The notes below the pieces were generated by a model that did no database searches, had not been told where the DNA came from, and saw only the letters and a program-made list of their open reading frames with translations. The translations under genes were made by a program, and so were the position numbers. This document shows, in pieces, positions 3,001-58,358 of a DNA stretch of 64,000 nt. This DNA is from Chlorokybus atmophyticus. Its lineage: Eukaryota; Plantae; Mesostigma and Chlorokybus algae. Within the stretch, counting starts at the first letter, position 1; every line of letters begins with the position of its first letter. The stretch is from assembly GCA_009103225.1 (NCBI GenBank), contig RHPI01000810.1, positions 1,343,962 through 1,407,961 of the forward strand, read 5' to 3'.

Positions 3001-3619
3001 TGACAGCACAGAGTTGAGAGTCACTGCAGCCGACATCCCCTTGCCGGTGTGGCCAGAAAAGGGCGATGTCCTGGAGATGCGGCACAACAGCAAGTCCATT
3101 TTCGACTTCAGACTTCCGCATGAGCCCCCAGATGAAGATCCTGCTGACCCACCCCCTTGGGTTGTTGTGGTCAAAGAGGTGCGGTCCGACGGTCATATGG
3201 TAGTCGACTACCTGAAGAAGGCAGGGGGGAGGAGGCTAGGCGTCTGGGTGGTTAACACAGCTGCGAGCGACCAGGTGGAGGACCCTTTCTCAGCCAAAAC
3301 AAAGCTCGACTGGCCAAGGCAAGGGAGCAGCAGAAGCAGCTGCGCTTGGACTGAGAGAAGTAGAAGTGATGGACGGCGAATGAAATTCAACCAACATCGC
3401 ATGTATTGGAAGCCAGGACAGCAGGCAGCAAGTGAGTGTGTTTGCACTTGCATTCACGTGTTTGTGAAGTGCGTGTGTCTGCATCATAGACCAGTTCGGA
3501 TAACTGCGCCTTGCAGACAACTATGTGCACTGTGCGCGTGTGCATGCGACTGCATGTGTGATGGCAATATATTACTGTATACACTTATGCACATCTGTTC
3601 TGCAGGCTATGTACACTGA
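1..3619 (+). CDS. CACTA/EnSpm (CMC superfamily) transposase, 5' end outside window; exons ~1-826, 1083-2438, 2713-3431, ~3606-3619; one -1 frameshift near 2290
   Basis: Motifs CPTC, IHADGF, LEPLVRDLENLYLNGF, WTGDQPAQC..PCRRC, DTMHLLLEG, FKAQDLQMFVQY, YWCFVQER and AYLRNGVIY match CMC transposases with a D/D/E triad. GT-AG introns 827-1082 and 2439-2712 splice in frame (RPG|QEITLR; YR|RRGVDN). The last intron and exon are uncertain. Confidence 0.85.
872..2660. repeat. Intronic repeat motif GTCTCATAGGCA (7 direct copies, 1 inverted partial), including ~3 tandem 57-bp units at 2449-2620
   Basis: Direct copies start at 872, 931, 2485, 2542, 2599, 2620 and 2644; inverted CTATGAGAC at 991. All lie in transposase introns. 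Confidence 0.9.
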
Positions 3620-3707
3620 ATGGATGCCTATAAACCCAGCCTGCAGCTGGACTATAAGCAACCTGAAGTAGGTACCTGGGTGCTACTGACTCAGTCTATA
3701 GGCCATA

Positions 3708-6700
3708 CTAGGGTGGTGGTGGTGGCGGTGGTGGTGGTGAGTGTCTGCTCAAGTAGTAGCCGATCAGGTTATGATAAATGGCTTTGGTGTAGTGTGGGCC
3801 CAGGTGCATAACTTCCCGTTGTGCCGCAGTGAGGTGTGTATATGATCTGTTCGCCATGTTCTGATCAAGCAGAAGCAAAAAGTGAGTGAGGCCCGGCTGC
3901 AGAGCACTAAACGCCTCCAAAGTGTTGGCGTACAAAGGGAGCCCATTCTCCGCTCGTCGTTGATTGATGTCACGGAGGTAATGGTGCGCTGTGTTTCGGA
4001 TCAAAACACACAGTGCAGCAGGATCACTGTCCCAAGTGTCTCGTGTCGCTTGATTGTTCCTCTGCGCCCAGGCATTTCGAGCTTGTATGCAGACCGCAAG
4101 CTCTGGAGCCATCAGCTGTTGCCAACCTTGCAAGTACTGTTGTATGCGCTGGGTAGTCTGTGCTCCTCCTTCGCTCAACGAACGTGCCCGCGCGCCGGGA
4201 CTTTCAGCCAGGAAGTCCTCCACCACAACCCGCATCCACTCATCAACCAGCACGCCTTCCATTCCACGCGAATTTGCTGTTTTTCAACGAGCTCCAGGTC
4301 ATCTTCTAAGTTCGTGACCCGCCTATCAAGTTGATTGTTCTCCCTTTGCTGTTCAATGATTTTCTCTTGCAGTTCAGCTTCTGGCGGTAGTGCGGACGTG
4401 GAAGGAATGTCAGCAGCTCCACCACCTGATATTACAGTCTGCAGCATCTGAAGCGTTTTCTCGAGCCTCTGCTGGGTATCTTCGAGCAGCTTCTCTGTAT
4501 GACTGACACGCTGCATGGCTTGAGCAACGTTTTCTTCCGATTCTGCCAGGTCCGCCTGCGCCTTCAGGATTTCCGGGTCGTCCATGGTGGCTGCTCGCTT
4601 GCCGTCTTTGATAAGCTTCTTATTGGACTTCTGGAGTTTGGCATTTTCCTGACGCAGGCGTTTCACCTCCGCATTCAGGGCGTCTGCTTGCCTGCTTGCC
4701 TCTGCTTGCAGCTTGCCCCCAGTCTCTTGCGTTTGAGAGGCCAGCCGCTGGAGTTGTTTGTTGAGAGACTCCACTCTTGCTTCGAGGCGGTTCTTCTCAG
4801 CAGTCAAAGATTCAACCTCTGTTTGCAGCTTGCGCCCAGCCTCTTGCGCCTGTTGAGAGGCCTTCCCGAGTTTTTCATTGAGAGACTGCACTGCTGCACG
4901 GAGCTTCCTCCTGGCCTCCTCGCCTGTGCGCAGGCGCTCGCGCAGGCTCTCATTGTCCTGCCGTAGGCTGCTCGCCTGCAGCTTCTTCCTGGCCTCCTCG
5001 GCTTGGCGCAGGCGCTCACTCAGTTGCAAGTTCTCCTCTCGTAGGCGGTCCGCCTCTTCACGCACCTGCTGAGCGGAGGACTCCTGCTGCTGCTGCTGGC
5101 CGCTGCTCTCCTCCAGCTTCTTCCTGGCCTCCTCGCTTTGGCGCAGCCGCTCAGTCAGGCTTGCATTGTCCTGTCGTAGACGGTTCGCCTCCTCAAGCGC
5201 CTTCTGCTGAGTGGACACCTCCTGCTGCTGCTGGCCGCCGCTCTCCTGCTGCTTCTTCCTGACCTCCTCAGCTTGGCGCAGGCGCTCACTCAGTTCTGCA
5301 TTTTCCTTTTGTAGGCGGTCCGCCTCCTCACGCGCCTGCCGCTGGAGGGAGGCCATTTGCTGAAGCTGGATTTGGAGTTGAGAGGCCTCCTCGGCTTTGC
5401 GCGCAGCGTCACGCGCTTGTTGCGAGGCCTCCTCGGCTTTGCGCAGGCGCTCCTGCAGGCTCTGGATCTCCTCCAAGCGTGCTGCTGCTGATCCTTTGAA
5501 GCTGCTCCTCGCCTGCCGTAGGCTCACATTCTCTGTTTCCAAGCGTTGCCTCTCCGCATTGGTCCACCTCAACTGGTGCTGAAGCGTGTCTTCCTGCTGC
5601 TTCCGAATGGAGTCTTGGTGTGACTGCTGACGCTGAAGTCTTGCATTAAGGGCGTCAACCTCTGCTTGGAGCTTTTGTGCTTGCGCGGAGGGCTGCTGCT
5701 GAAGCTGGTCAAGAAGGTTCCGCTGCTTTTTCCTGGCCTCCTNAGTCAAGAAGGTTCCACTGCTTTTTCCTGGCCTCCTCGGCTGTCGTAGGCGGTCCCT
5801 GTCAGCAGTGGTGGCAACCAACTCTTGCGCTGCATCCTCACGCTGCAAGGCCAGCACCAACTCTTCATCCAACTCGCTGATCCTGTTAAAGGCGGCCTTG
5901 ACGTCATCTTCAATGCGCTTGCAGCGGGTGAGGTGCTCTTTCAAGGCAGGGCGTTCACCGCACAGACGTTCAGCTTCTTCCCTCGCCAGCTCTGAACGCC
6001 GAGCATTGATTTCTCCCAGCTCTTGCAAAGTTTGTTGTAGCTGTTGTACGCGCTGGCTGTCTTCCGCTCTGGCCTGATCCTGCTGTTGCAGCCTTTGTCG
6101 CTCAGCATTGGCTGCATCGAGAGCGGCCTGCAGCTGTGGTATGCGCCCCACGGCCTCCTCTCTTTCCTTCTCCTGCTTTGCAAGAGCCACCTCCAGCTTC
6201 TGTATGCGCCCCCCGGCCTCCTCTCTGGCCTTCTTCTCCTGTTGCAGCAACTCTGCATGCTGTCGGCTAGCCTTGGCTGCTGCTTCAACAGCGGCTGATA
6301 ACTCCGCTGCATGGATGCGCTTGACATCAGCGCTGGCGGATGCAACGGCGTGGGTGCTTGTAGACGCCTCTTCTAGGTGTTGCTGCATCGAAACACCAAG
6401 TTAGAGCACAAACACGAAACAGCGGGGTCATAGACCGAAATGGACAGTGCGGCCTGTGACGCACAAGTAGCCATAGACTGACTAATGCTGACTTTGGCCA
6501 AGGGTTACCTGAAGTTGGGGCACTTGCTGTTGGAGGTTCTGGACAAAGCCTTCAACCAACTTGGCTATGTTGCTGGCATTGGCGACTCCTGAACGTGCAG
6601 CAGCGATACCGTCTTCCAACTTCTTACGAGCATCGTCGTCACCGTCACCGTTGCTGTCATCATCGCTGCTTTCATGATCGCTGGGTTCATCACCACTGCC

Positions 6701-8948
6701 GTCTCCATGATGATCACCTCCAGCAGGTTCATGATGATCACCTCCAGCAGGTTCATCACGACCTCCAGCAGGTTCATCACCTCCAGCAGGTTCATTACCG
6801 CTGACATGCTGACCCTCAGCAGCACCTCCTGGAGTCCCTCCAGCAGTTTGATGGCCACGGTCTATGGCATCCTTCTCTGCGCTTCCTTGTGGTGGCCTGT
6901 CCGGAAACACTAGAGGAACTGAAGGTCGCCCCGAAACCCCTCCCAATGCTGCAAGTGCAGCAGCAGCAGCAGCAGCAGAGGCAAGAGCAGCATCAACAAC
7001 AGCTTGAGAAGGATTGCTAGAGGTAGCCGCAGCACCAGAAGCAGCACTAGAAGGAGTCGGACCGGGAGCTGCAGCAGGAATGGATGGCCAAGGATGGTTG
7101 CACTCCCACTTGTTGATGAGGTATGCGCGCAAGGACTTGTAATTCGCAGCCCATCCTGGATCCTGAAAATGGATGGTCTTCATCTGCTCTTCCAGCCAAA
7201 CTTCTCGCTTCTGTTTCCTCCGATTAGCAATGGCGTTGATGCGTAGCCGGCGTGTCTCCCACTCCGCCTTGTTGCGTTGCTGCAATTGCTTTTGCTCAGC
7301 CTGCCACTGTGCAGTCGTATCTTGGGCGTTTTGAACATTGCTGCGCACTGCAGCTATCTGCTCCTCAGTTAACCAATGTCGCCGGCTTTCATTCAGACCA
7401 TTGCGCACAATGGACAAAATGGTCTTCTCGATTCTTGACTGATAATCCTGCTCCTTCAGCCTGTGCTGATTTGCAGCCCGTGTCACCATGGCGCCCTGAG
7501 CGGCAATCTCTTGAAGGCCTTTGCGAATTGTAGTCTCTGCCTTACGGAACACTTCCTTGGTAAGTTTCTGCGAATCATAACCACCAGTTAGAACACAAAT
7601 TACACACAACTCATTTATGTTTAATAACACAAACATACCCTCTGTTCTTTCTCTTGTTCTATTCTGGAGTCTATCTGTCTTAACAGCAGGAATAGTCTAT
7701 CTAGCACGCGTGTAAGCTCAGCGCACTTGCTTTCAGCTGAGTCAAATATCCCTTTTAAAAGGCGTACAGACGCCTCTCTGACAGTGTGATTGACTGTGTC
7801 GTTCTGGTGACACAAGTGCAGTCTATGAATGCACAATGACATGTACGACCATGCACTGATGAAGCGTTCTCAACACTTACATTCTGTCTTTGATTTCGGG
7901 CGACTTGTGGTCGTTTCAGCACCCTCCATGTGTAGGCGCCTAAAGATTCACCAGCTTGACGCGGTGCAGTGCAAGCGGCGAGGTACGCGCCGTCTTCGAG
8001 CGCGACGCCATGGCGAGCTGCCATCTCTGTTGCCTCCTTGATAAACTTTTCTCTGGCCGCCTCGAAAAAGTACTCCATGACCTGAGGTAAGACGGTGATC
8101 AGCACATTGTTTGCAATGCTGAATGACAAGGTCATAGACCGCACAGCTCTCACAGATGCAGTCTATAACAGCAGGAGACAGTGTCTGGCAGAGCAAGTGA
8201 TGTCTATAGGCACGAGCCACAGGCTGCATATACTCACATGGTCTGTAGGTTGCTCGTCTGGAGGTGGAGGGAAGGGATCGTATTCCATGAGCAGCTCTTC
8301 CCCGGCGGCGATGTCACTCTGACTCCTAACCTCAGCTGCCTGCACCGCAGCCTCATCAACGGAGTCCATGATGTGGCAGTTGGGTTTGTACTGCGTATCG
8401 CGGCTGGAGTTGAGGAAGCCAGCTATGTTCCCATATCGAGGGTGGCCATCGATGACAGGGCTCTGGCGGCGTGGCACGTCCCTGATGACCTGCAGGTGGT
8501 ATCGCTGGTGGTGCAGGTGCTCCTTCTGAGGGAATGTCTTCTGCATCTCCCGGTAGGAGTACCACTTGCCGTCAAAGACCATGATGCGGTCACCCTTCTT
8601 AATAGGCTGGCAGGTGAACAAGCCGAGCCCTGCGCCAGGGATATTGGAAGGCTTGATGACGAACTCTTTGCCAGCAAAATGGAAGAGTTCGCCTATGGGA
8701 ATTGGACCATTCGTCCACAGCTGCCATGGGTCACCGGTCGCTATATGTATGCGCTTGCGGTTGGGAAGCTCTCTGTCACTCTGCAAACAACAAGTGACGG
8801 TAAGTTGGTGTGAATTGTCATAGGCTGCAACTGAGCAGTGCATGCAGCATGGCGCCCATGGCATGTGATCAGCATGCATGATACCATGCGAACAAAGACG
8901 CACCCGCAGATGTTCTTCTGATGGCGGTGGCAACTCCACAGCGTCCAT
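3708..8948 (-). CDS. Large multi-exon SET-domain + acidic/Ala-rich + coiled-coil protein (~1,560 aa); exons 8948-8904, 8780-8238, 8081-7881, 7803-7639, 7567-6509, 6382-3708 (frameshift at ~4280)
   Basis: SET motifs KPSNIPGAGLGLFT, IKKGDRI, IDGHPRYGNIAGFLNSS, NC, DIAAGEELLMEY. All five introns are GT-AG and phase 0, giving one continuous frame. Repeated LRQDNxSLxERLRQxEEARKKL coiled-coil units. The start codon is a best guess. Confidence 0.8.
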
Positions 8949-9160
8949 CCCCGTCTTAGTGAATCGATTGACCTCGGCTGCAGCATTGGTCACAGCCAGT
9001 TCACGGGCCTGCGCTGATCGGTGCACGTTTCGTGTAGGAAGCCAGCTTGTTCAATGGCTGCGAGGTGGCTTGCATTTGCACTGCACTGAATGGCAGCATG
9101 TCCTGTCGTGCTGGTTAGGCTGACCGCATGTACATGTGCTGACCTAGGAATGACTGGTTT

Positions 9161-12100
9161 ATGTTTGCAGTCAACGCTGCTGTACAAGTTGCAGCCAAGC
9201 CTGAAGGACTGACTGAGTCACTGGTTCCGCCCTCTAAGAGTACGCGCACTTCCCGGTGTGATGTCTTCCTCAGCCACAGGGGCCCAGATACAAAGTTACA
9301 CTTCGTTTACTTCCTGAACGATTGCCTGCTTAGGGCGGGTCTGACTGCCTTTGTGGACGAGCTCAATCTCAAGCCAGGTGACCCGGGCTGGGAGACTATC
9401 AAGGAGAACTGCCGTTCCGCTCGCATCCAGCTGCCAGTGCTGTCAAAAGGCTTTGGGGACTCGACCTTCTGCTTGGAAGAGCTTGACATCATGCTGCAAG
9501 CCAACTCTCAATCGGTTATGCCAGTGTTTTACAACGAGGGTGTCATGTCAATGGATGCAGTCCTGGAAGCTATCCGGACTAGCATACGAGGGTGAGTGCC
9601 ATGCTGACGTGAGCAATGCTGAGGTAAAATGTCTGATGGTACTAACAGTCATTTGCGTGGCGCTGTAGGAGAAGCAGCGACGGTGATGGTGCCTACGTCT
9701 CCAACTCAAAAAAATGGCTGCTTTGCTTGGAAAAGGTATCAAAGTGCACTGGATGGAGGCTAGACCAGACAAATGGGTACGTCAAGTACTAGCACCTACA
9801 CAACCGGTTGATGGCCAGCGTTATGTATGCCAAGGCAAGGTGATGACGGCATGGTTTTTGCAGGAATTCATTGGCTCTTGCTCGGCAAGTGGTCAAGGGC
9901 ATTCTGGACAAGCTGGGCTTACCTGCCATGTATGTAGCTGAGTATCCAGTGGACGTTGACCGCCGAGTGAACACTTTCTGCGTTGACCTACTCCGCACTG
10001 TGCGATCCAAAGGAAGCAGAGTAGGTGTGCTAGGCCTTTGGGGCGAGGATGGTGTTGGAAAAACAACGTTAGTCAAGGCCATGTACAACCAGCTGAAAAG
10101 GGATTTCGTTGACAGCTGCTGCTTTATCAGCGTTGGCCAAGACACAAGCGTTGGCCACATGCAAAGTCTACAGCAACAGGTCCTCGCAGATCTCTGTGGC
10201 GACAGAACTGAGAAGAAGCCTATTGACGCGGGGAAGGCTCTGTTGCAGACCCGTCTGCAGAACAGGCGCTGCCTGCTTGTCGTAGACGATATCTGGACAA
10301 TGGATCAGGTTGAAGCTCTTCTGGTTCCAGGTCTGACCTTGGCAGCTGGAAGTTACGTGCTGTTGATGTCACGCGACAGTCAGCTATTCAAAAGTGTAAG
10401 CTTGCCGGGGTCAGCAACATTGATGAGGAGAGCTGAACGACTAGAAGCTATACAAGCTATAGAACTCTTCTGCGGGTATGCCTTTGGTTCACCAGATGTT
10501 CCCAAGGTCATGACGCGTCTCGTTCAGGACGTTGCCATGGCGTGCAACGGCCTGCCCAGCCTCCTCAAGCGCTTCGGTCAAAGTCTGCGGGGTGAAACAG
10601 CAGAGAAAGCTTGGATGGAGGTGTTAAACAAGCTAAGAAGACCAGATCGGTTGCAGCTGAACACGCAGGATGAGAACCCAAAGCATCCCGCTGCAAGTGT
10701 TGCAGTCTGGGAACACAACACTCAATCGCTTGTGAAGCTGATGCAAGGACCTAGCGGCCCCGCGCGCTCCTGGGCAGCACGTGCCCTGAGCAGTATGTCT
10801 AAGACCGAAGTGAGCCAGAACAAGAAGAACAGTACCCACGTAACGAGATCGCTGGTTAAGCTTATGGGAGATGGTAACCCTGCAATTGCACTTGGCAAAC
10901 CGGCACGAGACCACGGAAGCAAGCACAACCTCCAAGGCCATGGGGCGTTCGCGGGAGACCTGAACAAGGACAAAGACCCAGTAGCATGCCATGCAGCCGA
11001 TACTTTGAGGCAGTTACTTGTTGCTAATCAAGACAGCATCGTGGTATGTACTTTCTCTGTGTGCTGTACAACCAGACATGGCTGTGATTTGACAACACCT
11101 TCTTTGGATGTTCTTGCCAGGCGGAAGCAAGGAAGGCTGGTGCTGTCCCTGCGCTTGTAAGGTTGCTGGTCACAAACAGATCGGAGACCTCAGCAGCGGC
11201 TGCTGGGGCTTTAGCAAACATGATGGGTGACCAGCAAAGCCAGGTACCGGTCGATATGTGTTTGCTACCACTTCTTCTAAGTGTTTGAACAACTTGGGCT
11301 GTACTTGTGCAACCGCCGCCTTCGCATTCAACACTGTCTCTTTGGTTGAGACTTGTTGCATTGGCAAGGGTCCCCAGCACATGCCATGGCAAGGTCGCAG
11401 CTGTCAGCAGTAGTTTGACAATACAACTGCCTGCAGCTCTATCATGCTGGCCTATGGGCAATGCATCTGTATGCTGTTATGTGTATCGCAGTCAGCAGGG
11501 CATCACCACAAGGTGCACACTTCTCACCCGTGTACCGGCGGCAGGATGAATTTGTGATGAACGGGGGCGTCACTCCAATGCTGAAGCAGCTGGATGTTGG
11601 AGACCGTCAAGCACGTGCAGAATCGGCCCGCCTGCTGCGCAACCTCACCAGAGACGCGGATCACAAGAGGAGCGCTGAAGCACAGGTATTGGTTGCTAAG
11701 CATTGCACGCCTGCTGCAGGAAACTATTACACTTGTGCCTGTCTCGTTCATCAAGTGCCTAATGTGCAGGCAGTTATGGAGGCGTACAAAACGGCCATAA
11801 TGAGGGCTGCGCAGCGGTTGGAGACGGGTTCAGTGGAAGAGAAGGATTTTGCAGCAGATGTGCTGGCAAACATTACGACGGACAGCAGGAAGGATTCGGT
11901 ACGACAGTGCTTGGCCAGCATCATTCACGTCTCTGTAACGCTTCCAAAGTGCTGCATATGTCACTCACCGATTTCTCTGTAGCTCTTTTGGGACAATAGC
12001 AAGCAGCCAAGAATAGCCACAATACTAACGTCTACACTTGCTTGCTGTGCCACAGAGGGCCTTGCCACAGAGGACCAAAAGACAAGCAGGAACAAAAGGA

Positions 12101-13129
12101 GAAGGAGATAACTTGTACAATCAGTCGCCTGAGCGTGTGGCTCCACTACAGACGCAGTGGGGACCAAGTTACAATCCTCGTCAGGAGCTGCCACAGCAGA
12201 GTGGTGGTGATGGTGCTGCTGATGGTGATGACGACGCCTTTAACAACATCAACGATTACACTGGCAACCAGTACAATAACGATAACTACGGGTCCGCCAA
12301 CGACGATGCCAACCCCATCACCCCATCGCAACAGTATCCGAACCCTGGTGCGGATGGTGCTGCTGATAATAATGACGACGCTTCCAAGAACATCAACGAT
12401 TACACTGGCAACCAGTACAATAACGATAACTACGGGTCCGCCAATGACGATGCCAACCCCATCACCCCATCGCTACAGTATCCGTACCCTGGTGCGGGTG
12501 ATGCTGCTGATAATAATGACGACGCTTCCAAGAACATCAACGATTACACTGGCAACCAGTACAATAACGATAACTACGGGTCCGCCAACGACGATGCCAA
12601 CCAGCCAATCACTGCATCGCAAGCATACTCTGGTGAGGACAATTACGCGCAGCAGCAAGCACAACCACAAGTGCCGCAGGAGTACCAGCAGGAGGATGTA
12701 TATGCCAACAAGCAACGGCAGCAAGTCACGCCAACGCGCGTGCAGCAAGGAGATGAAGATGACTGCTGCGGCTGCTTCGGGGATAAGGGTGCCAACACGC
12801 AACGGCAGCAAGGAAATGAAGATGAAGACTGCTGCGGCTGCGGCTACTTCGGGGATAAGGATGCAAACACGCAACGGCAGCAAGGAGGAGATGAAGACTG
12901 CTGCGGCTGCAGCTGCTTCGGGGATAAGCAGGCCAACACGCAACAGCAGCAAGGAGAAGATGAAGACTGCTGCGGCTGCAGCTGCTTCGGAGATAAGCAG
13001 GCCAACACGCAACAGCAGCCCGGAGACGATGAAGACTGCTGCGGCTGCAGCTGCTTCGGGGATAAGCAGGCCAACACGCAACGGCAGCCAGATGACGATG
13101 ACAACTGCTGCGGCTGCCGCTGCTGCTGA
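9161..13129 (+). CDS. TIR-NB-ARC-ARM repeat protein (NLR/TNP-like), ~1,061 aa; exons 9161-9591, 9669-9776, 9864-11043, 11121-11243, 11545-11685, 11770-11898, 12056-13129
   Basis: TIR: CDVFLSHRGPDTK, AFVD, STFCLEEL (catalytic Glu position), VMPVFY, KKWLLCLEKVSKCTGW. NB-ARC: P-loop GEDGVGKTT, Walker B LLVVDDIW, VLLMSRD, CNGLP. ARM-like repeats (AGAVPALVRLL..AAAAGALANM; GGVTPMLKQL..SARLLRNL). The exons sum to 3,186 nt in frame. A TTTGCAG at 9164-9170 could mean a further upstream exon. Confidence 0.88.
12220..12610 (+). repeat. Coding tandem repeat, three ~47-aa Asn/Asp-rich units (NINDYTGNQYNNDNYGSANDDANPITPS)
   Basis: Three near-identical ~141-bp units in the last exon. Confidence 0.9.
12745..13129 (+). 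repeat. Coding tandem repeat, six Cys-rich units (DEDCCGCSCFGDKQANTQQQ) ending CCGCRCC-stop
   Basis: Read directly from ORF 12038-13129. Confidence 0.9.
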
Positions 13130-15001
13130 TGCTGATGCTTATCATGTACAAACTCTTCGCGGAATTTGAAGTGCTGCCATAGTGACATGCATATACGCAC
13201 AGTAGTATATATCAGACCTATATGGAGGTCGACATATAGGCACTACAAGTATGCATGTGTTCAGACATAAGTGTATACTTCCCCGGCATAGGGAGGTGGC
13301 CACATGCATGTTGATGCAGCAACCGCTGCCATCCATTGGCTGGTACGCGGATGGACGAAAGTCCAAGACATGGTTGACTCCTCACGCAAGTAACCAACTT
13401 GTCTCAGCCATCTGCATTGTACACGACAAAGTTTGAAGCACCACGGGTGCGGACAATGCCCACAATTGTACTTACTGACACTCATGACATGTCTGCGGGG
13501 CTGTGGGTTGTTGTTGATAGTGTGCGCTATAAGGTGGTGATCCCCTGTCCGAATGCCGGTGCTGAAGAGGTGGCATACATCAACACCACGTGCCAGCGGT
13601 TGGGGGCAGCGTTGGATGACAATTGCCAACACGCCTCCGCAACAAAGCTGCCAAAACAGTGTGTGTGCAGCATTAATTCTGCATCGGGAACCTGCAGCAG
13701 CGCCAGTAAGCTCACCACCATCACCATCGCAGGGCATGCCAGGCAGGGCAACGTGCTATCATGTATAGCGCAATCATTCAGCGGGCCAGTCCTCATAAAA
13801 GCAGCATGCATACGAATAACATCGCGGTGCAAACAGCGTCATGAACACCTGTGTGACTTAACCATGCATTGTAGTTGTGCAACCAGTATGGAGTATTCAT
13901 AGGTGTCATGCCTTGAGCACTCGACACATGCAGTGTCACCGAGCCGACTGTTGAGGGACACCTGCAGCCATGTACTGGGCACACTAGGGGAACCATGCAG
14001 CTATGCATTGTGTGGCGGAAGCCTATACAAGGGTACAAACAGTGTACAAGGAGGTACTGGGCAGATTCTGCTAACAGTTTCTATTCTACCACACCCATGC
14101 CATAGATGCCTCTCCTGATGCGGGGGAAGGTGCCAGAACGCAGCCTGAATGCAGGCAGGTAGGCAGAGCAGGCAGGGAAACATCGATATCATGGGGGGCG
14201 GTTCTTAAGCATGTCACAACTTCGGACGCACCTCACACGGAAACACCTTGAACAGCGACCCTGTAAGAAGTTGGTAGCGTCAAGACTACGGCAACCCCAC
14301 CCACATGCCATAGTGTAGCCGGAGTTGGACAATTGGGGAAGGGCGTCCTACGTGAAGGGCACCACCGGTGTTCCCCACCATCCACTCAGATTGGAGGAGG
14401 ACGCAGGGAGGGGCCTAGCCAATTCAGTATACTACACGCCATGCTGTTAACGACACCATGCTGCATCCGATGTGTGACACAGCACTGTGTTCTACACATG
14501 CCTGCCCCAGTTGACCATGTAGCAGGAGGGGGGTAGCACCTCTACCGTTGGGAGACCACCGCTCGGGGACGCACCTTGAACGTCCACCCTCCCTCACAGC
14601 AAGTGTTCCGGCCAAGGCTTGCTGGCCTTGTCAATGTTGTCCACGCCAATGGAGACACCAGCGGGGCCACCCGTGCGCGAGGAGTCCAGCCCCCGCTCGC
14701 TGCTGACCGGGCCTGCGCTCAGCGCAGGGGCCTCGGGCCAAGTATATTGCCTTGACGCCGATAAGCCGGCTTCATCCGCCTCCATCATGCACAAGGCCCA
14801 TGCACATGCACAGCCTAAGGCTATGCAGCCTGAGAGACATGGGTCGATGCTGCCACCTCAACTCCTAAGATGAAGAGTCGAACCGGAGTACATTAAGATC
14901 AACTGCGGTCATCATCAACGGCTTCAAAGACTCCGAGAGCTTTTGGCGCAAATTAACAGACCGGATGGTAGAAGCCGAACAATTACCGCAAGTATAGTTG
15001 T

Positions 15002-16489
15002 TGTAACTGAACATTAGTACTTTTAATTTTGAGCTTATCTAAGTAATACCTCTCCCCGTAATGTGTATACGTCTTGCTTGAAGACTCTTCAAGCAACCCC
15101 ACTCTGAGTGCGCGTGCTGTGAGAGTGTGTTGGTGTTGAGAGTGAAGTGCTTGCCATCATCTCCTTAAAGCTGCAACCGACCCAGCGCATCCCTGCCAGA
15201 GGTCGAACCCGTTCTCCTCACACCAGCAACTTATACGGCACTGTGCATGACACTTTTGCAGTATCATTGCTGAGTGCATATGAAAAGCATTGAGAGTGAC
15301 TTGGCACCAACTCCGAGTGATCCACTTTGTGCTCATTCACGAGATCACCATATTGTGCATGAGTATGCATGAGGCTGCATTCCAACCCATGAGCTTTTAC
15401 ACCTACCAGTAGAACAACCGTTGTGCAACACATCATTATTACCTATCGCACACTTTCTGATTATCATATACAATAGGGGAGTGTCGCGCGGCCAAGTTTA
15501 ATTGTACGATAGTCTACAAATCAATGCAACTTTTATATAACTGTCCATTTCATAAATGTATCGGTGAAATATACGTGTGAGTTAATCAAATACAAATTGT
15601 TTGATCCATGTATTTAATTAATGGTTGAATGATAATGGTTTGACTCTAACTCATTGATATGGGACTGTGAAGTAGTTTAAATGAGTCGCCATACTAGGTG
15701 GTGCATGGCAAAAAAGTAAGTGTTATACCTAGCTAAACAAGTTATTGAAACTATCGACTATAGGTTGCATATTACTTAGGCCTAGTTTATGATATGGCGC
15801 CGTATATATTAAATGATGATTAGCGAATTGTATTTTGCAAATTAAAACCGATTTTAATGAATTGAGAGATATAGCGACATTCGCAAAAATGTTGCGAATT
15901 ATGTTGGATGCTAAGTGATTTGCAAATTGCATTTCGCGACTCATAAGATAGTTTAAGTGAATTGAGGTATTTAGAGTCATTCACAAAAATGTTGCGTGTT
16001 GTTCTAAGTGCAAATGTCGTAACCAAAAGTTTGCAAAAATGCCCAAGGCATTGGGTAGAAATTTTCACTATGCACGCTAAGGGTGAACTATATAGCCTCC
16101 CATCACCGCATTAGGATTTCATGGGGTTATAAAGACATCCATGTGATGAGAAGACACTTGTGAGTAGAAGATGTACCTAATAAGAATGAATAACTGATCA
16201 GCAAAGTTGGGCAATTTCGAGAATTAGACCCAACGCCACGTTTGCGAGGTTCACTAGGGTAAATTGCAAAATCGCTCAAGTCATTAAGTTCGCGTGTCGC
16301 GTTTACACGCAAGTGTGTACGACGCCGCGACATATGACAATAGGGTGATTATGCAACGACTCTTGTTAGTAGGTAGCATCCGCCACTCACTTGTAAGCAA
16401 GTGTGAGCTATTATGATGCCCATAATCCAAGCAAATAGTTGTGAACCAACTTGTTGGATTTAACCCTTAATATGCATATATCCCTTACA
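15002..16489 (-). mobile_element. Probable LTR of a decayed Ty3/gypsy element; AT-rich with an internal ~90-bp duplication
   Basis: On the minus strand a purine-rich tract (GGTAGTGGAA) precedes TGTAAG at 16489, downstream of the integrase relic. The left boundary is a guess. Segment 15294-15503 recurs at 50948-51160. Confidence 0.4.
15294..15503 (+). repeat. Dispersed repeat, copy 1 (copy 2 at 50948-51160)
   Basis: Shared GAGTGACTT(G/A)GCACCAACTCCGAGTGAT and AGT(A/T)GAACAACCGTTGTGC blocks, collinear in both copies. Confidence 0.75.
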
Positions 16490-16949
16490 TTCCACTACCG
16501 GGTTCCTCACCGCTATCTCTTAATACTTAATAATAATTATGGTGAACCAATGGTTGATGAACTATATGGTGAACTACCGTGTGAACTAATTGCAGAGTAA
16601 CAAAGTACGCGACTCTTGGCACAATAATACGTCGTAGTAGTACGCGTACAGCAAGTAGTTGTCAATAATGCGTTGAAGGTATGTGAAATCGTACGATATT
16701 GGGCTAGGACAAGTCGTTTGTCGAGAATGACCGCGGATAGCATAGAAAACGGCGCCGTGCGACCCACCTCACCTATCAGCACTGCAAGCAATAAAGCATC
16801 TTAAGAAGGGGTTGTAATTTATTTAATAACATTATGTAAAAGCATAACTATAAGAATTGACTTTAATCATTTCATATCATTGGTGGGTCAGACACTGTAC
16901 TATGATGCATTGTAATGTACAATAAGGACTCATTGTACATCACAATGTG

Positions 16950-17630
16950 GGCCAATTGCATATGGCAGGCCTCACACATCCATTTCCTTTGGGAACCTTG
17001 CTCATGGCGGAGACAGACACCATATGTGCCAACCGGCTACACATCTGCCACACAGCAGCATGTCATGCTGTCTCACAGCAACATTGCTTGTTTCTCCGTC
17101 AGCGCGTGCGCAGCCCTCGCATCTATGGATGGCATCAAGAATAGCTGCATAGGGTCCATTGCCCTATCGATGTTGGGTAGATGACGGAGGGCACAGCTTT
17201 TCATCTTTTATGTGCACGCCCTGGCATCGTTGCCCCAAATAAAAGCACGCCGTCATCTCGCACCTCGTTGACTCTCAGTATTATATTGGCACTGGTGTTC
17301 AGCGTGTCCTTGGTTTATCGGTGGAGATAAACATAATCTCCTACCTCAAACTTTGCATACGGGGCTTGTAGTCTTCGCAGCGCACTCGAGCGTATCATTG
17401 AGTGTCTCTGTGTTATGCAATGAGCATAACGTGTTTGCCAATAATTGATTAGCTTTGCCTTGATGGTAAGCTCCGTGACAAAGCTTTTCTCATCTTGCAC
17501 GCGGGCTTTTTTACAGAAGCTGGAAGCTGTGGGTAACAGCCATATAGCAAAATCTATGAGATGTATGCCCCCAAGGCAGCCTGTCGGCTGAATTTGTAGT
17601 CCATCAAAAGCCATGTCAGCTGACAATCCC
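16950..17630 (-). pseudogene. Degenerate Ty3/gypsy integrase C-terminus with a PHD finger
   Basis: AKFEVGDYVYL, ILRVNEVRDDGV and HLPNID, then CEGC...MLLCGRCVAGWHIWCLSPP..VPKG.WMCEAC across stops and frameshifts. Confidence 0.75.
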
Positions 17631-18531
17631 TGTTGCTCTTATCATGACCATGGCAATACTTACACAGTCCTTCTTCTCAGTTTGCACAAACCTCTCAGTA
17701 AGTCTATGAGCTGGAGAACGGTTGCGGTGTATGCGGCATTGATTAATGAAGCAATCATCTGGCAAGTCGTCTCAACTTGCCTCGCAACTCTGTGCCCTGA
17801 TTTGCCAGCACCTCTGCACACCCATCAAATCTGCTTCACACTTGGTTCAACCGCGTGTTGACTTAGCAGTGATGAGTTACTAACTCATCAATAACTACTA
17901 GTAGTAGTTTGTGAGTGATTTCACAAATTGCTAACTCATGTGCCTCAAGTTTGACTGAAACCAGCACCATGCAGTTCCTAACAGCACAATAATACAACAA
18001 GCTGACCGAACAGTTTTAAGCTAGGTATTAGACCAGTTTATATATATATATATATACACAAGTGCGCTTGTGTATAGATTTGTGTAAATAAGTGTATGCT
18101 CGTGCGTGTGACAAGGACGTGTAGTATACCAAGAGTGTGTGCGTAGATGTACAAGGAAAAAAGCACATAACCATAGCAGGTTATAGCGTTGCGCATGCAC
18201 GAGAAAGCAAGAGAAGTTTGGGGAAGCGAAAAGGAAATCGTGACAAGGGGGAGACTTTTCTCAATGTCTGCCGGTCCAGATACATGTACAAAATTGATCG
18301 AGCTCATCATCAGTCAGGTTATCTTTATAGGTGGCGGCAGCATTGCCGTCTTCGCCGTGAATGGATGAAGTGAAGGCGTCATCATTGCTGGTAGGCAAGT
18401 GGCTACCGCAACCTCAACCTCAATCTTACCAGCACTGCTGCAGTACAAGTTAGCCCCTACTCCGCCGCCTTCCCAATCCTGCCTCTGATTTGCTCATTCC
18501 CCTCACACTTGCACGGGTTCAGCCATTCTGT

Positions 18532-18552
18532 CACACACACACACACACACAC

Positions 18553-18628
<76 letters not shown>

Positions 18629-18750
18629 AGGTATATATGTATATATACGCATATACGTATATATACATATGTATATATGTGTATATATGTGTACACACGT
18701 ACATATACGTATATATGTCCATATACACATGTATATATATATATATGTAT
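18532..18750. repeat. Compound microsatellite, (CA)n then TA-rich
   Basis: Seen directly. Confidence 0.97.
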
Positions 18751-18926
18751 TCTTCTTGTGATTCTTGTTTATATAAAAGTGTGATTGAGGCGGACATGCA
18801 TGCTGGGTTGCAAGAATGTCAGCGATATTGCGGGGTGTGGTAGAGTGAATGCGTCACTGCGTGCAAGTTTGTGTAACATGTTAGCCAGTGAAGGTGAGAG
18901 TATATGCGCGTGCATGTGTGTGTTTG

Positions 18927-18928
<2 letters not shown>

Positions 18929-19003
<75 letters not shown>

Positions 19004-19007
19004 NGAG
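18929..19007. repeat. (GA)n microsatellite
   Basis: Seen directly; one N at 19004. Confidence 0.97.
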
Positions 19008-20128
19008 TGTGCAGTTGGAGAACAGCTTGCGCGTAAAGCTCTGTGTGGATGATGTGGGTAGCGCTTGCTGAGCTGTAAGTTTACTATTATGTCTGCAATA
19101 AGTCTGTGTGATGTTCGAGTGTGCATCATTTTCGAGCACATGCTACTACTTGTCGTGCGTGGGTGTACTGCTGTTGTCCTGTTGCCAACAGTTAGTTCCG
19201 TAAGCAATAGACAGCACCCTTACACACTTCCATGCTCTCTGCTGTGAAGTGCAGATGTGCTGTGTTTGCATTGCGCACGTATCATGTTACAACATTTAAC
19301 ATTGACATTTCACTCGCACTCATGGATGGAGCAACACGCAGTGAGCCTCCCAACCGTAGGCTATGCAACCTTTGCATAGCAGCGCTGGGGACAGGTGTAA
19401 TTATAAATTTATAATGTGCAGCTTTCATGATGAACTCCATTAGCATTCTCGCTCCTAAATTAAGTGCGCCCAGTACAGCTTTGGCTGATTACTCTCAGGT
19501 TGGTTGCCATGATTGCGAGCTGCTGTTGATGTGGCAATTGCACACGCGATATAAAAGCGAAGTAAATTTATGCCATGTGGACCATTGCTCGGTGGGGAAA
19601 GGTGTATTTACCCTGACACTTGAGTGTTGTATTCCAAGTTGGCAGAAGGAGAGCCCTGGAGCAAACACTTGCGATGAATGAAATTCAAGATAATTCCCTA
19701 CGTTTGCTTGCAGGATATTGTACTTGCGTGTTCATGGCTGAGAACTATTTTCCCTACTAGATTTCTTGCCTTCATGGAGCACATGACCAGAGCGTGGCAA
19801 CATTTCAGATAGTATCGCCAAGTTGTTAATTCCTTTAATGTTGCTACCTAGTAATCGTGCTTCCATGTGAATGGATACCAAGCATCACCTCTGCAACAAC
19901 ACAGTAGACCGCTAGTATCGGCCCACACAGTACTACCTCCTGCAAGAGTCGTACTGACTGCTGCAAATATACACTGTGCCACGTGGAGACTGGCAGAAAA
20001 GGCGTAAATCTCGCTTAATAAGGCTTGCATTGCAATAAGCTTGGATTGGAATAAGCTTCACGGGACTTGTGCCTACCAACCTTTCGCAGATGCCGCCGCC
20101 TTCTTTTTTTTTGGGGGGGGGGGGGGGG

Positions 20129-20286
20129 NNNNNNNNNNNNNNNNNNNNNNNNNNNNNNNNNNNNNNNNNNNNNNNNNNNNNNNNNNNNNNNNNNNNNNNN
20201 NNNNNNNNNNNNNNNNNNNNNNNNNNNNNNNNNNNNNNNNNNNNNNNNNNNNNNNNNNNNNNNNNNNNNNNNNNNNNNNNNNNNNN
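20129..20286. other. Assembly gap (N run) flanked by poly-G
   Basis: N characters. Confidence 0.99.
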
Positions 20287-21878
20287 GGGGGGCGGCGAGG
20301 GCTATGTACGGTCGTTCTTAACATACCCGCAGTCTGCTGCAAGCGCTGCTGCTTTGGCCTTTCTAGCAGGGGGCTTGTGCTTGCAATGCCTTGCTGTTTG
20401 CAGCGTCTCACAGCTGCTCAGTGTTGGTGCCTTTCATACCTAATATTCTCATGGGGACTCTCTTCTGTTGCCTTGGTTGCGCTCAACCAGACCTACCCAA
20501 AGCTTGTTTACTAAAACCATGGCCACCTAGGTAGGGCACTTGGTTTGTCAAGAAAGCTTGTCCATCTAAAACACCTTCACCGCTCGCGGAACAGCATGTT
20601 GGTGCCGCACAAATATAACTACGTGTCCACTTACACTAATCTGCACGTGTGCGGTGCCTGCGCTGACGCATGCACGCGCTCATATGCAAATACCTACATG
20701 CAATACCGTTGCTTCCTTTCATCATTGAGTAGTCTTGACAACTCGTCCAGACTACTCAACCGCCACATCAGATGTGGCAGACATGTTGCGCAGTGCTGAC
20801 TGTCATGACATCAAGCGCACAACGCGCAAGTCTTGAACCTCTGAGGTTGTTGCATTGGTGTTCATTGCGCATATGTACAGGCAGCATGGTATGGTGTATA
20901 ATAGCACGGAGTTGCCGGCCGCAACGACATCAACACACATGTAAGCAAGGTAAGTAATTGGTAAGAGCAGTGCGGGGAGCAGTGTTACTGCCTGCATGTA
21001 TGTCAACTAGTCAGCACCTCTCACACCGGACATTGGCAGGCATTGACTGTGCATGATGCTGATGGGACATTGACATGGCATGTGCATGCTGCATGATGGC
21101 AGCGGACCGGTGTGCATAGCACTCTTGCTACTGCGGCGCCGGCCTTTGGGACGGCCTAGATGCCAATGTGACATGACCAACGTATCGTATGAGCCAGGCC
21201 ACGCAGCATGGATGAAGCCATGTGGCCGCAGAGAGGCATATGTTCGTGCACACAGCGTGCAGCAGCGGCGGGTCCAAGTTTCAGCGTCTTTGTCGTCGTC
21301 GCCCTTGTGGTCATGGATGCCGACGCCTACATCGACAAGCAAGCCTAACCTCTGCTTCTCTCTTCTCCTCTCCTCTCCTCTACACTCTGCAGGTGGTTGA
21401 GTGCTGCCATCTGTCTGCTTGCTGCTATACACGTCCACCTGTTGCTGCTTGAGGGTCTTACTTGGGCTAGTTGAGTTGGAGGAAGCTGTGCATAGCTCTG
21501 CCTTGGCCCCCATGTAATCGCATGACTGCTTGCTTGTCTTTGCTCTATTGCTACCTACTTCGGGGTTTACCTCGTGCAACCTGTGTGTTATATTGTCATT
21601 GCTGTCATCATGCTGCACTGCAAATGTGACATGCGCCCATATGCACCTTTCATGCAGACATTGCAGCATGCTTGGTTGCACTATGACAGTAACTCGTTGA
21701 CGGCAAAATGCGGCCTGTATCAGTATATCTGTAACAAGCTGCGCAAAAGACACTATGTACATATGCTCTCGTTTCAAAACTGACATGCAATCCGCCTCAA
21801 GGCATTGAGGTGTTCAAGGACACAATGCCACAGCACTGCTATGTATCTGAATGCCTGCAAGGATGCGGGCGGTTGCAA

Positions 21879-22720
21879 TTAGACCAGAGATTTTTGCTGT
21901 TCATCTAAAGCATGAGAGGTGGAAGACACGGTGGGTTCTGTAGTCCCTCTGTACGCCTCACGATGCATATCTTCCAGATACTTATAGCGCTCAGGTCGGT
22001 TATCGCGCTCTAGGTAGTGGCCGCTGTCACCAATGTTGATGAAGCCACCGTGATAGTAGTTAGCAATGTCAACCGGCTCCAACAGTTTGCGGTAGTTGTC
22101 ACCTCGACTGAGCCAAAGGCGGCCCTTTGCGAAGACTTTTGCCGGCAGCGCCTCGTCTTTTGCAAGCTCTGTTGCCCAGTCCCAAAAGCTTGCGAGGAGG
22201 CGGCGAGCGCTGTTGACACGACTGGCGTCATCATCACCTGTGGTGCTTTCGAGTGCTTCTGAAAAAGCAGCGTAGTAGCGGGCTTGGTGCTTGCGTTTGT
22301 AGCTTGATACAGTTGACATTGCATCTATGTGCTCCTTGGTGTACCTCTCGTGCAACTCCCAAGCTGCCTGCAACTGCAATCTGCACACATACACACATAC
22401 ACAACTTGCCTGTAGCTTGCATTGTCAAAATAAATTGACAAGCGTTGTTATGCTGTGCAGCGCAATCAACATTGACACAATGGCAATGAGAGTGCGGAGT
22501 ACATATGCTGGCATGGAACCTTCAGCAACAGACACATTATATACCTGTGCGCGCACACACCTATGACGTACCTGTGCTGGTCGTCATCACGAAATGCCTG
22601 GGCCTGTCGCAAAGCTTTGGCAGCGATGTAATTGCTGACAATGCTTGCGACGGCACCGAGAATGCCTGTAACAGCACCAATGGCACCGAGCGCAATAGCC
22701 AAAACCTCTGCGCTCCCCAT
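21879..22720 (-). CDS. Hydrophobic N-terminal helix + EDS1/PAD4-type EP-domain segment, 216 aa; exons 22720-22572 and 22380-21879
   Basis: The phase-2 GT-AG intron 22571-22381 joins DQHR|LQLQ in frame. Ordered motifs YK..YYAAF..RVNSARRLLASFWD..ALP..W..YRKLLEPVDIANYY..SGHYLERDNRPERY match my recollection of the PAD4/EDS1 EP domain (YYDFF..VNMSRIRLAKFWD..ELP..EPLDIANFY..GGHYLEGNRPKRY). The N-terminus is LAIALGAIGAVTGILGAVASIVSNYIAA. No GxSxG lipase exon was found nearby. Confidence 0.85.
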
Positions 22721-25078
22721 CAAAAACTGCCGTGCAGCAACAAGTTTGGAATTGCATGTCAGGCGCACAAACAACTTGCCAATGCACAGAACACTGTTGA
22801 CATTGATTGCAATAGCGTTGCAGACTGCCTGTAACCACGCATGGGCATGTTGACAATCACAAGCATGTGCAATGGCAAGCTCGGCCGCACCAACTTAGCA
22901 CTGTACTGCATGAAAAATATGGTACTACGCCGCTGCTTGCGTGCAAAGCAATGGTGCATTTACACGGCGCTTACCAATGCAAATTGTCCGGCGGTTAAGG
23001 CTTATTTCCAACTTCAGGACAACCAAAGGCAGTACACTTGGCCTGCATTATCTCTCAAGCGTGAGCACGCAAGACAGTGCACTGGTACTGGTGAAAAATC
23101 ATCTGCCATGCTGCAGCCTCACGCATACATGACAAGCACGTACTGGCTTTCTATTGTTGCCAGATTCGCACCAAGACGCTTGACGCATGCGTACATCCAA
23201 CCGCCTTGACAACTTGCTAGAGCTTGCGGCTATGCCTGTCAAGCGCAACGCGCTTGCATCCAGGTCATTGCATATTGCCTCAACAATGAAAGTCGACGTC
23301 TGAACACACAACAACTCTGTTATACAGTTCACACATGAGCAGCAGCTGCAATTGCGTAAATGCTCAGCCAAGCGCGCCGGCGAAAGGCTGAGCTCGTTGT
23401 CAATGCTCAACGCACGACGGTGCACAGCAAACCACCACCACTAACAACAACAACGTCATCAGAAGGCGGCGACAAGCACACTGCAGTGCGCATACACACT
23501 GCTAGCAAGCAACCCGTAGTAGAAAGCACGATTATTACAGCTGCAATGTATGTGCTTCCAACCAGAGATTGCTTGCTCAGCTTTACGTAAGAGGCCGTCA
23601 CTAACGTGCCAATAGCTCAACAGCAGTGTTCCGACAAGCCTACGATGGGTTCCTTGCCTCCAGCACGACAATGTGCTACACATGCGTGCGTAGGTAGTCA
23701 CACGTCCCAGCCCTCACCCCACGCAAGCTACAGCATGGCAGCGATCTGTTGGCACATGTCCAGCATGCATGGGCATGCTCATGCAAATGACAGGCTCCGC
23801 TCACTCTTCCGCAGCACGGTAGACTGTGACAGGCCTGCACAGGCTTGCGCATTCACCCCCCTCAGCCGTCCACCATCAGCTGGGAGCGTCTTGAAGGAGG
23901 CAGCACCGCGCCGGCGCATTTTCTTGCACACAAGCATGCACCGGGAACTCAACGTCTTCCTGTAACTTACGTCGACATGCGTAGAACTGCTGTTAAGCTG
24001 CTAACTAATAGGCCTGAGCTTGTGAAGCTACAGTGATGCTCGCCGCAAGTTGTACTCATCGCCTCGATATAGAGCCTCGTTTGGGAAAGCGCCCCACATC
24101 TCATGCTCGTTATGAGACCCTTGCACTCCTCGGGAGGCTGCCTGGTGCGGGCCTATTCGCACTTGGCGACTGCGTAATTACTGTAACAAGAGTACTTGAC
24201 TCAGATTTAGACAGCTGTTATATCTTCAGCACATACACATGCTATTGTATGCAATCCTTGCAAGTTCAACACATTGTAGCAAATCAATAAAGTAATTGGT
24301 GTATCGAAAAAATGAAGCTGCTGATGATTGGATGGGGATCAGTAGATTACCCTGAGAGTGTGCACGCATGTTGCATATCTTTTGCTCTTTTGCTTTAGGG
24401 GCCGCACTATTTACCATGTGCATAGGGTATAAGTCATTCAGCACATCATGCAATGCTTAGCATGCAACACACTGTGCATTGCTAGCAGCTAGCACATGCA
24501 GCCAACATAAGCAAATAGCCAATACCACACATGTACTTAAACACACCCCGGCACCCAAGACTACTCAACTAGTGCTTCCAAGCGCTGCTATGTGCAGTGG
24601 ATAGTGAGCAGCGGGTGGTAGTTGGGACGAAGAGGTACTGTAACCAATCTGGCGAATACATAGCAGAGATGGAGGCAGACTGTCAATCGTTGGGTGCAGT
24701 GGAGGCAGAGGGAGCAAGGACGGTGCAGAGCAATGCAGTGCAGTGAAGTGGTGTGGGTGTGTTGTGGATGTTTCAGCTATGCCCCCGACCCCTCCCACTT
24801 TCATCCTCCCCGTCAGGTTGTGAGGCTTTTGCAAGTGTGACGGCCGTGTGAGTTGATGAAGCGGGTTTTGCACATTAATGCTCTATAAATAAATAAATTA
24901 AAATGTGTTATGCACATGTTTCGTCAAAATATGTCAACAGTTCAGTCTCAGGCCATTATGCCACATGCAATCATTGGTGACGAAAAGTAAAGGACACATA
25001 AATGAATAATAGCAGTAGCTGACCAGACATGCATGAGGGCAAACTAGCTGCTCCCCTCACGCGCTTACCTGAGCACAA

Positions 25079-58355: not shown

Positions 58356-58358
58356 TTC

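Follow-up and report, generated by a model that had tools for sequence, protein, structure and literature searches.

An expressed EP-domain protein with a predicted membrane anchor lies near a TIR-NB-ARC-ARM gene in Chlorokybus atmophyticus, probably within an EP/TIR immune-type gene island

A stretch of 64,000 nucleotides of the Chlorokybus atmophyticus genome (hereafter the window; contig RHPI01000810.1, positions 1,343,962 to 1,407,961, forward strand) contains two genes of immune type: one for a short protein in which an N-terminal hydrophobic helix precedes an EP domain of the kind known from EDS1 (the TM-EP gene, for transmembrane helix plus EP; product P0001), and one that combines TIR, NB-ARC and ARM-type repeat domains (the receptor gene). 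The balance of our evidence leans towards this locus being part of an EP/TIR immune-type gene island of this alga, and not a demonstrated two-gene, operon-like module. Sequence comparisons indicate that the coupling of TIR and EP genes is well supported at the level of the family, and that the pair in the window is its weakest instance. The window is eukaryotic DNA of about 50% GC with short GT-AG introns, and the two genes are convergent and tail-to-tail, with 8,749 nt from stop to stop, a distance that includes a gap of 158 N whose length is only an estimate. Their domains (Pfam), strands and spacing were as the original prediction had described them from the sequence, with a JGI gene model in agreement for the EP gene. 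The features of the pair are as follows.

9161..13129, plus strand: TIR-NB-ARC-ARM receptor gene, an inferred seven-exon model of 1,061 amino acids with splice sites read from the sequence
22720..21879, minus strand: TM-EP gene, 216 amino acids in two exons (exon 1 22720-22572, intron 22571-22381, exon 2 22380-21882, stop 21881-21879)
22622..22708, minus strand: N-terminal hydrophobic helix of P0001, about residues 5-33 (Kyte-Doolittle mean 2.33)
21930..22379, minus strand: EP domain core of P0001, about residues 52-200 (Pfam EDS1_EP, PF18117)

As modelled, the EP domain of P0001 is a true EDS1-type EP fold. The open reading frame (ORF) at 21879-22394 matched the EDS1_EP profile with E 6e-17 and 62.5 bits (Pfam gathering cut-off, 23.1), and a phmmer search of all solved structures returned only EDS1, PAD4 and SAG101, with E values of 1e-14 for rice EDS1 (OsEDS1) and 4e-11 for PAD4. 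An AlphaFold2 (AF2) model of P0001, built from a 35-sequence alignment, had a mean predicted local distance difference test score (pLDDT) of 94. Its top 24 Foldseek matches in the PDB were all EDS1, PAD4 or SAG101 (query-based template modelling score, TMq, 0.47-0.66); these chains were the only ones with E of 0.1 or below, the next match having E 0.4, and the best superpositions gave a root-mean-square deviation of 2.3-2.9 Å across about 150-173 columns. The signature motifs FWD, EPxDIANYY and RPxRY are common to P0001 and the EP domains of the EDS1 family, and W116, E151, P152, Y172, R178 and P179 occupy columns that are invariant across the algal, protist and seed-plant sequences.

Most of the residues that contact the ligand in seed plants also have counterparts in P0001. 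In Arabidopsis EDS1-PAD4, the nucleotide pRib-AMP/ADP is contacted by EDS1 residues K440, D469, N472, Y473, K478, T482, T492 and R493, and on the PAD4 side by R314, F375 and K379 (10.1101/2024.10.29.620780). By alignment, EDS1 K440, D469, N472, Y473, T482 and R493 correspond to K124, D154, N157, Y158, S169 and R181 of P0001, and PAD4 F375 and K379 to F133 and R137, such that eight of the ten mapped positions are kept or conservatively replaced, PAD4 R314 being unmappable. For the EDS1 arginine matched by R181, the R493A substitution was reported to abolish the ligand-induced association of EDS1-PAD4 with ADR1-L1 (10.1101/2022.05.02.490369). Among the algal EP copies, the pocket set of P0001 is the most similar to that of seed plants. 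The profile match and the fold bear out the EP assignment made in the original prediction.

The TM-EP gene is intact and expressed. Its two exons, read from the ATG at 22720 through a donor AG/GTACGT at 22572 and an acceptor at 22381/22380 that keeps the frame, give a product identical to the JGI Chlorokybus atmophyticus protein Chlat1/627 (model Chrsp103S00004). Two RNA-type contig sets, from studies of 2013 and 2021, contained 0.47 and 0.42 of the words sampled from 20287-22900, a coverage in keeping with a transcript of about 1.2 kb; each set falls far below the size of a genome assembly. The N-terminal helix is rich in Gly and Ala with small-xxx-small spacing and is followed by Lys and Arg, from which the positive-inside rule would place the EP domain in the cytosol and the N-terminus outside; the AF2 model has one long helix across residues 3-62. 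Unlike EDS1, PAD4 and SAG101, with which it shares the EP fold and motifs, P0001 has no lipase-like domain (no Lipase_3 match), and the 30-residue hydrophobic helix stands in its place. We also know of no helper RPW8-NLR partner (NLR, nucleotide-binding receptor with leucine-rich repeats) for P0001, in contrast to the EDS1 family.

An indication that EP domains are linked to TIR-type domains comes from elsewhere in the same genome. When 1.84 billion representatives were searched by HMMER for relatives of the EP part, 135 matches were obtained, among them several further Chlorokybus proteins. Four of these (P0002, P0004, P0007 and P0012) repeat the helix-plus-EP architecture, and three are fusions that hold TIR-type and EP domains in a single chain: P0005, a SEFIR-EP protein (Chrsp103S01043) that shares scaffold 103 with the window; P0009, an LRR-SEFIR/TIR-EP protein; and P0013 (Chrsp5S06985), in which an N-terminal hydrophobic helix is followed by EP-like regions at about 67-204 and 526-630 that flank a TIR domain. 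Fusion is a classical sign of a functional link, here of EP with TIR-type domains, and it argues against the EP domain being unrelated to TIR products. The separate, distant genes of the window make a weaker case for EP-TIR coupling than these fusions do. Although they come from the same alga and share the short EP core (about 39-43% identical to that of P0001; only 29% in P0013), the fusion proteins and P0001 are of separate EP lineages. All seed-plant sequences in the EP tree fell into one clade (support 99/98), and P0001 lay outside it as an orphan lineage, grouped neither with the SEFIR-EP protein of its own scaffold nor with a dead EP gene beside it. This position suggests an island built up from EP genes that were already old and diverged, and not by recent local duplication.

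A side observation concerns P0005, of which residues 63-367 were covered by the PADLOC bSEFIR model (E 4e-21), a match that continues beyond SEFIR and takes in the EP domain's first half. From sequence, this is a hint that a helical segment resembling EP might also exist in bacterial SEFIR defence proteins.

Gene neighborhoods in other organisms are also consistent with a TIR-EP link. A TIR gene stood beside an EP gene in five of the eight other non-seed-plant loci, these five being from about four organisms, always in divergent orientation and at distances of 46 nt to 4 kb:

L009, minus and plus strands: TIR_2 gene at 8496-9485 (minus) and helix-plus-EP gene at 9532-10092 (plus), head-to-head with starts 46 nt apart
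L011 (ENA assembly contig), divergent: multi-exon TIR-NB-ARC gene with its start some 0.7 kb upstream of the EP gene
L008 (JGI metagenome 3300060284), divergent: TIR-NB-ARC-LRR-Sel1 gene 1.4 kb upstream, with two more TIR-NB-ARC genes within 8 kb
L005 (JGI metagenome 3300060284), divergent: TIR-NB-ARC-LRR gene 1.5 kb upstream, plus a TIR-only gene
L012 (NCBI assembly contig), divergent: TIR gene 4 kb upstream, 43% identical to the TIR of the window

As in the window, a short EP protein is found here next to a TIR or TIR-NB-ARC gene. The N-terminal helix, an architecture common to many of the EP proteins compared, was present on the EP proteins of L005, L008, L009 and L011, and none was seen in P0029 of L012. 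By rough arithmetic, five divergent pairs out of five would arise by chance about once in 1,000 trials (four orientation classes, p 1/4), or once in 250 if L005 and L008 are counted once. Seed-plant DNA provided a negative control: a metagenome scan for EP relatives returned 49 loci that were nearly all EDS1-family genes with upstream lipase exons (host DNA), used for this purpose only, and the same TIR hidden Markov model found no TIR in about 170 kb flanking some ten separate EDS1-family loci of seed plants. The coupling of TIR and EP genes, for which the original prediction had suggested a test in relatives, is supported at family level by fusions and divergent pairs, whereas the convergent, 8.75-kb layout of the window is not the conserved one.

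Three of these comparisons yielded observations in their own right. The L009 contig, which carries the tightest TIR/EP pair seen, is gene-dense with 22% GC; an origin from a giant virus was considered and dropped, as its MYG1 gene is an ordinary eukaryotic one, about 40% identical to those of diverse eukaryotes. In L007 (Elliptochloris bilobata, JALJOU010000074.1), Lipase_3 ORFs at 6801-7331 and 7595-7813 (E 6e-6 and 1e-3) with a GHSLGG elbow lie directly upstream of an EP ORF at 10001-10628, all on the plus strand, and a second, divergent Lipase_3 gene lies at 1-6185. The two upstream ORFs are annotated as separate genes of 213 and 142 amino acids, but lipase and EP may be one gene, which would represent the EDS1 architecture in a chlorophyte. 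Finally, EP-domain ORFs on two contigs of about 57-60% GC (L045 and L046; JAABUN and JAABUM) come from Antarctic cryptoendolithic (rock-dwelling, lichen-type) metagenomes and probably derive from a green-algal photobiont; no TIR was found in the 12.5 kb of sequence available for them.

The second gene of the window is a plausible TIR enzyme on an NB-ARC switch, and the features of its model are these.

9161-9591, 9669-9776, 9864-11043, 11121-11243, 11545-11685, 11770-11898 and 12056-13129 (stop included), plus strand: the seven exons
9161..9776, plus strand: TIR domain, split across exons 1 and 2 (Pfam TIR_2/TIR, E 3e-13 in ORF 9161-9595)
10012..10668, plus strand: NB-ARC domain (Pfam, E 7e-27 in ORF 9871-11160; profile positions 15-232 of 248)
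10690..11898, plus strand: ARM-type repeat region, from the end of exon 3 through exon 6 (limits inferred, most repeats read by eye)
12056..13129, plus strand: low-complexity tail, a 144-nt repeat in 2.8 copies followed by a 69-nt repeat in 5.2 copies

All six introns are GT-AG with junctions in phase, and the 1,061 codons run without an internal stop. The TIR domain is closest to the solved plant TIRs (AtTIR, L6, ROQ1, RUN1 and RPP1), with which its CLxEL motif aligns, placing the catalytic Glu at E107 (codon 9479-9481), and the P-loop GVGKTT of the NB-ARC domain is intact at 10051-10068, with Walker B and GLPL-like motifs read by eye; the catalytic-type TIR on an NB-ARC domain described in the original prediction was thus upheld. 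The winged-helix/MHD part was not detected, and the AF2 model of exon 3 (pLDDT 54) is too weak past the nucleotide-binding domain to decide on it. Although the receptor shares a plant-type TIR with catalytic Glu, followed by an NB-ARC domain with P-loop, with the TIR-NB-ARC-TPR (TNP) and TIR-NB-ARC-LRR (TNL) proteins, its C-terminal repeats are of ARM type (Arm, PF00514, E 3e-7 at 11124-11222 in ORF 11088-11285), with no TPR match in the receptor and no LRR family in any scanned exon. It is therefore neither a TNP nor a TNL. A homologue search with the NB-ARC exon gave a single match, a weak one to a plant coiled-coil NLR (28% identity), and no annotated protein model for the receptor was found within the searchable length range. 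For Chlorokybus, the literature already mentions NLR-like receptors whose repeats are of alternative types (PMC10952240).

The tail of the receptor calls for separate caution. Its repeats (12202-13124) are highly alike, with 94% matches in the 144-nt and 91% in the 69-nt units, and are open in two frames; their similarity points to a young, recent expansion. They encode units rich in Asn and Asp as well as six Cys clusters of CCGC type, and the protein ends in CC. The open frame has no Met; it is in phase with exon 6, to which an inferred GT-AG junction without RNA support would connect it, and it is therefore either a spliced exon of the receptor gene or non-coding. Alignment of RNA reads to 8900-14800 gave only two scraps of 18-19 nt, which were of no help for the gene model. 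Membrane attachment had been proposed for both proteins, and the N-terminal helix of the EP protein sustains it on that side, whereas attachment of the receptor through a Cys-rich tail joined only by this splice is speculation. On its 5' side, the receptor adjoins a SET-domain ORF (8163-9026, minus strand; Pfam E 1e-10), whose 5' side lies about 135 nt from the receptor ATG; the head-to-head neighbor of the receptor is therefore the SET gene and not the EP gene.

Between the two genes lie the following features.

18532..19003, no strand: microsatellites from a repeat scan, (CA)47 at 18532-18625, a TA-rich stretch and (AG)37 at 18929-19003
19352-20101 (approximate), plus strand: decayed second TM-EP gene (pseudogene), in collinear tblastn pieces to the Chlorokybus paralogs P0002, P0004 and P0007
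20129..20286: assembly gap (N) inside a run of G, to the right of the pseudogene and on the 3' side of the EP gene

The original prediction had filled this spacer with microsatellites and retroelement debris, of which the microsatellites were recovered and the debris was not: no retroelement protein domain was found by Pfam in ten ORFs, nor any long repeat involving the spacer, and part of it is the dead TM-EP gene. The pseudogene contains in-frame stops and a frame shift, and its pieces correspond to the paralogs' transmembrane helix, their middle part and their RPxxYY region, placing it in the P0002/P0004/P0007 subfamily. It ends 28 nt short of the gap, and an attempted test of continuity across the gap, in which the alignment was extended beyond the right edge, gave only noise and no resumption. 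The gap is flanked by T9 G16 on the left and G6 on the right, and neither coding region crosses it, such that no reading frame is interrupted; however, the receptor and the EP gene stand on opposite sides, and their linkage therefore rests on the scaffold join. For comparison of synteny, no other contig on record was found to encode P0001. A single N also follows the (AG)n microsatellite directly, at 19004, and other Ns or gaps in the window are at 5743, 35067-35549, 37337-37809 and 57451.

Several of our results weigh against reading this locus as a working part of an EP/TIR island. The EP domain of P0001 is partial: positions 8-124 of the 211 in the profile match (about 120 of those known from the EDS1 family), the protein ends some 30 residues later, and the C-terminal half of the seed-plant domain is missing. 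Two ligand contacts have no clear equivalents, EDS1 T492 being replaced by E180 and K478 falling in a differing loop. A homodimer prediction for the EP domain (two copies of residues 45-216) returned a score of 0.00, which lends no support and counts neither way. Upstream of the EP gene (22.7-31 kb) there is no remnant of a TIR, NB-ARC or SEFIR domain, and the comparative loci are few, with two of them (L005 and L008) from one metagenome. The pair in the window, tail-to-tail at 8.75 kb, is twice as far apart as the loosest of the other pairs and differs in orientation from all five. Furthermore, no transcript contig was found on 8900-14800 in four RNA-type runs, among them both runs in which the EP gene was detected, although this does not prove the gene silent.

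These last points bear most heavily on the stronger claim, that the receptor is the specific signal generator for the TM-EP protein and that selection has kept the two genes together as a dedicated sensor/effector pair. Such a module would be in keeping with the location of the genes within 8.75 kb of each other, the recurrence of TIR/EP adjacency in other loci, and the catalytic Glu of the TIR and the pocket residues of the EP domain, both of which are kept. However, the convergent arrangement contrasts with the five divergent pairs at 4 kb or less, a dead EP gene, microsatellites and a scaffold gap intervene, and co-expression, which a two-gene module would lead one to expect, was not seen in the same runs, with the EP gene in the RNA-type contigs and the receptor absent from them, an absence that is not proven. 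In addition, TIR genes that neighbor EP genes at the other loci have different sensor domains (LRR-Sel1) or none, and nothing thus ties EP proteins specifically to ARM receptors. We therefore regard a dedicated pair, as originally proposed, as unlikely.

At the opposite extreme, the two genes might be neighbors by chance, with the EP domain serving as a helical protein-interaction or membrane module unrelated to TIR products, and with fast-evolving immune-type genes piling up in transposon-rich regions. The window is indeed rich in transposons, with a Ty3/gypsy-type element at 53-60 kb (53314-59534, minus strand; gag, protease, reverse transcriptase, RNase H and integrase ORFs), and L001-4, L007 and L010 have no TIR within 10 kb of their EP genes. 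The fusion proteins of Chlorokybus, the uniformly divergent orientation of the five TIR neighbors elsewhere and the conservation of the nucleotide-contact residues are difficult to reconcile with this view, which makes a purely fortuitous association quite unlikely.

We favor membership in an EP/TIR island, and judging from sequence, TIR products in general are probably what P0001 responds to. Under this scenario, activated TIR-type enzymes would cleave nicotinamide adenine dinucleotide (NAD+) into ribosylated nucleotides; the NB-ARC receptor of the window may be among these enzymes, without having to be the sole or dedicated source. The anchored protein would then bind the nucleotides with its cytosolic EP domain, probably between two paired EP domains as in EDS1-PAD4, and binding could alter the packing of the Gly-rich helices, leading to a membrane or ion-flux output or to the recruitment of a partner. 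The TM-EP protein could also act in the opposite sense, as a buffer or negative regulator that soaks up TIR products at the membrane or restrains the EP fusions by EP-EP pairing. No output domain beyond the helix was recognisable in P0001 by Pfam or AF2, and several EP paralogs of differing architecture coexist in this alga and could pair, both of which would suit such a role. Nevertheless, there is no evidence for pairing, the homodimer score giving no verdict, and the conservation of the Gly-rich anchor across lineages suggests that the membrane matters for output; we consider a buffering function very unlikely. Least probable of all is that the receptor gene is silent, decaying or wrongly modelled and that only the EP gene functions here: its missing transcript contigs in four runs, the lack of an annotated protein, the already dead EP gene next to it and a tail built of young tandem repeats would fit, but seven phase-consistent exons without a stop across 3.2 kb and intact catalytic and P-loop motifs speak against decay, and low expression is common for NLR-type genes.

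In a broader interpretation of the island, which we advance tentatively, as a possibility that falls short of probable, short membrane-anchored EP proteins would be old and widespread receptors or effectors for TIR nucleotides, present in algae of both the streptophyte and the chlorophyte line and in at least one AT-rich eukaryote. The EDS1 of seed plants would have originated through the union of such an EP module with a lipase-like domain, the Elliptochloris locus would preserve a trace of this event, and the TM-EP protein of the window would be a working member fed by the TIRs of the island. The proposed logic, in which a TIR nucleotide acts on a small membrane-anchored sensor, resembles that of bacterial TIR signalling (type II Thoeris), CBASS and Pycsar, where nucleotide signals switch on transmembrane effectors. 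The resemblance is by analogy only, and unlike the bacterial systems, the genes of the window form no operon. No EP relative was detected when prokaryotic genomes and IMG/VR were scanned with two alignments, no PADLOC model matched P0001, and a structure search of the ESM Atlas found nothing above a template modelling score of 0.5; a feature search of the same resource scored DUF4760 and hypothetical proteins of bacteria at 0.91-0.93, on fewer than 170 features in common, a result that serves as a lead only. The bridge to bacterial TIR-effector operons that the original prediction had envisaged therefore finds no footing in the prokaryotic and viral collections scanned and stays at the level of analogy.

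EP proteins have been stated to occur only in seed plants (PMC10834447), and we found no literature on helix-plus-EP proteins or on their coupling to TIR genes. Of the TIRs tested in a preprint of 2026, only three, one from Ginkgo and two from Physcomitrium, killed Nicotiana benthamiana cells without EDS1. TIR domains of lineages that lack EDS1, by implication Chlorokybus among them, can still act through EDS1 once placed in Nicotiana. By implication, the Chlorokybus TIR fusions to enhanced yellow fluorescent protein (TIR-eYFP) needed EDS1 for cell death, and Chlorokybus TIRs would thus make EDS1-activating molecules, which fits the existence of an algal EP receptor.

To this setting, the locus described here adds an expressed, intact TM-EP gene whose pocket resembles that of seed plants more than in any other algal copy, a sister copy that has decayed, and a TIR-NB-ARC-ARM gene nearby. 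A lipase-less, membrane-anchored EP protein that retains most pocket residues and recurs beside TIR genes would provide a concrete candidate reader of TIR signals outside seed plants, and the TM-EP class as a whole would be a candidate ancestor for the EP half of EDS1.

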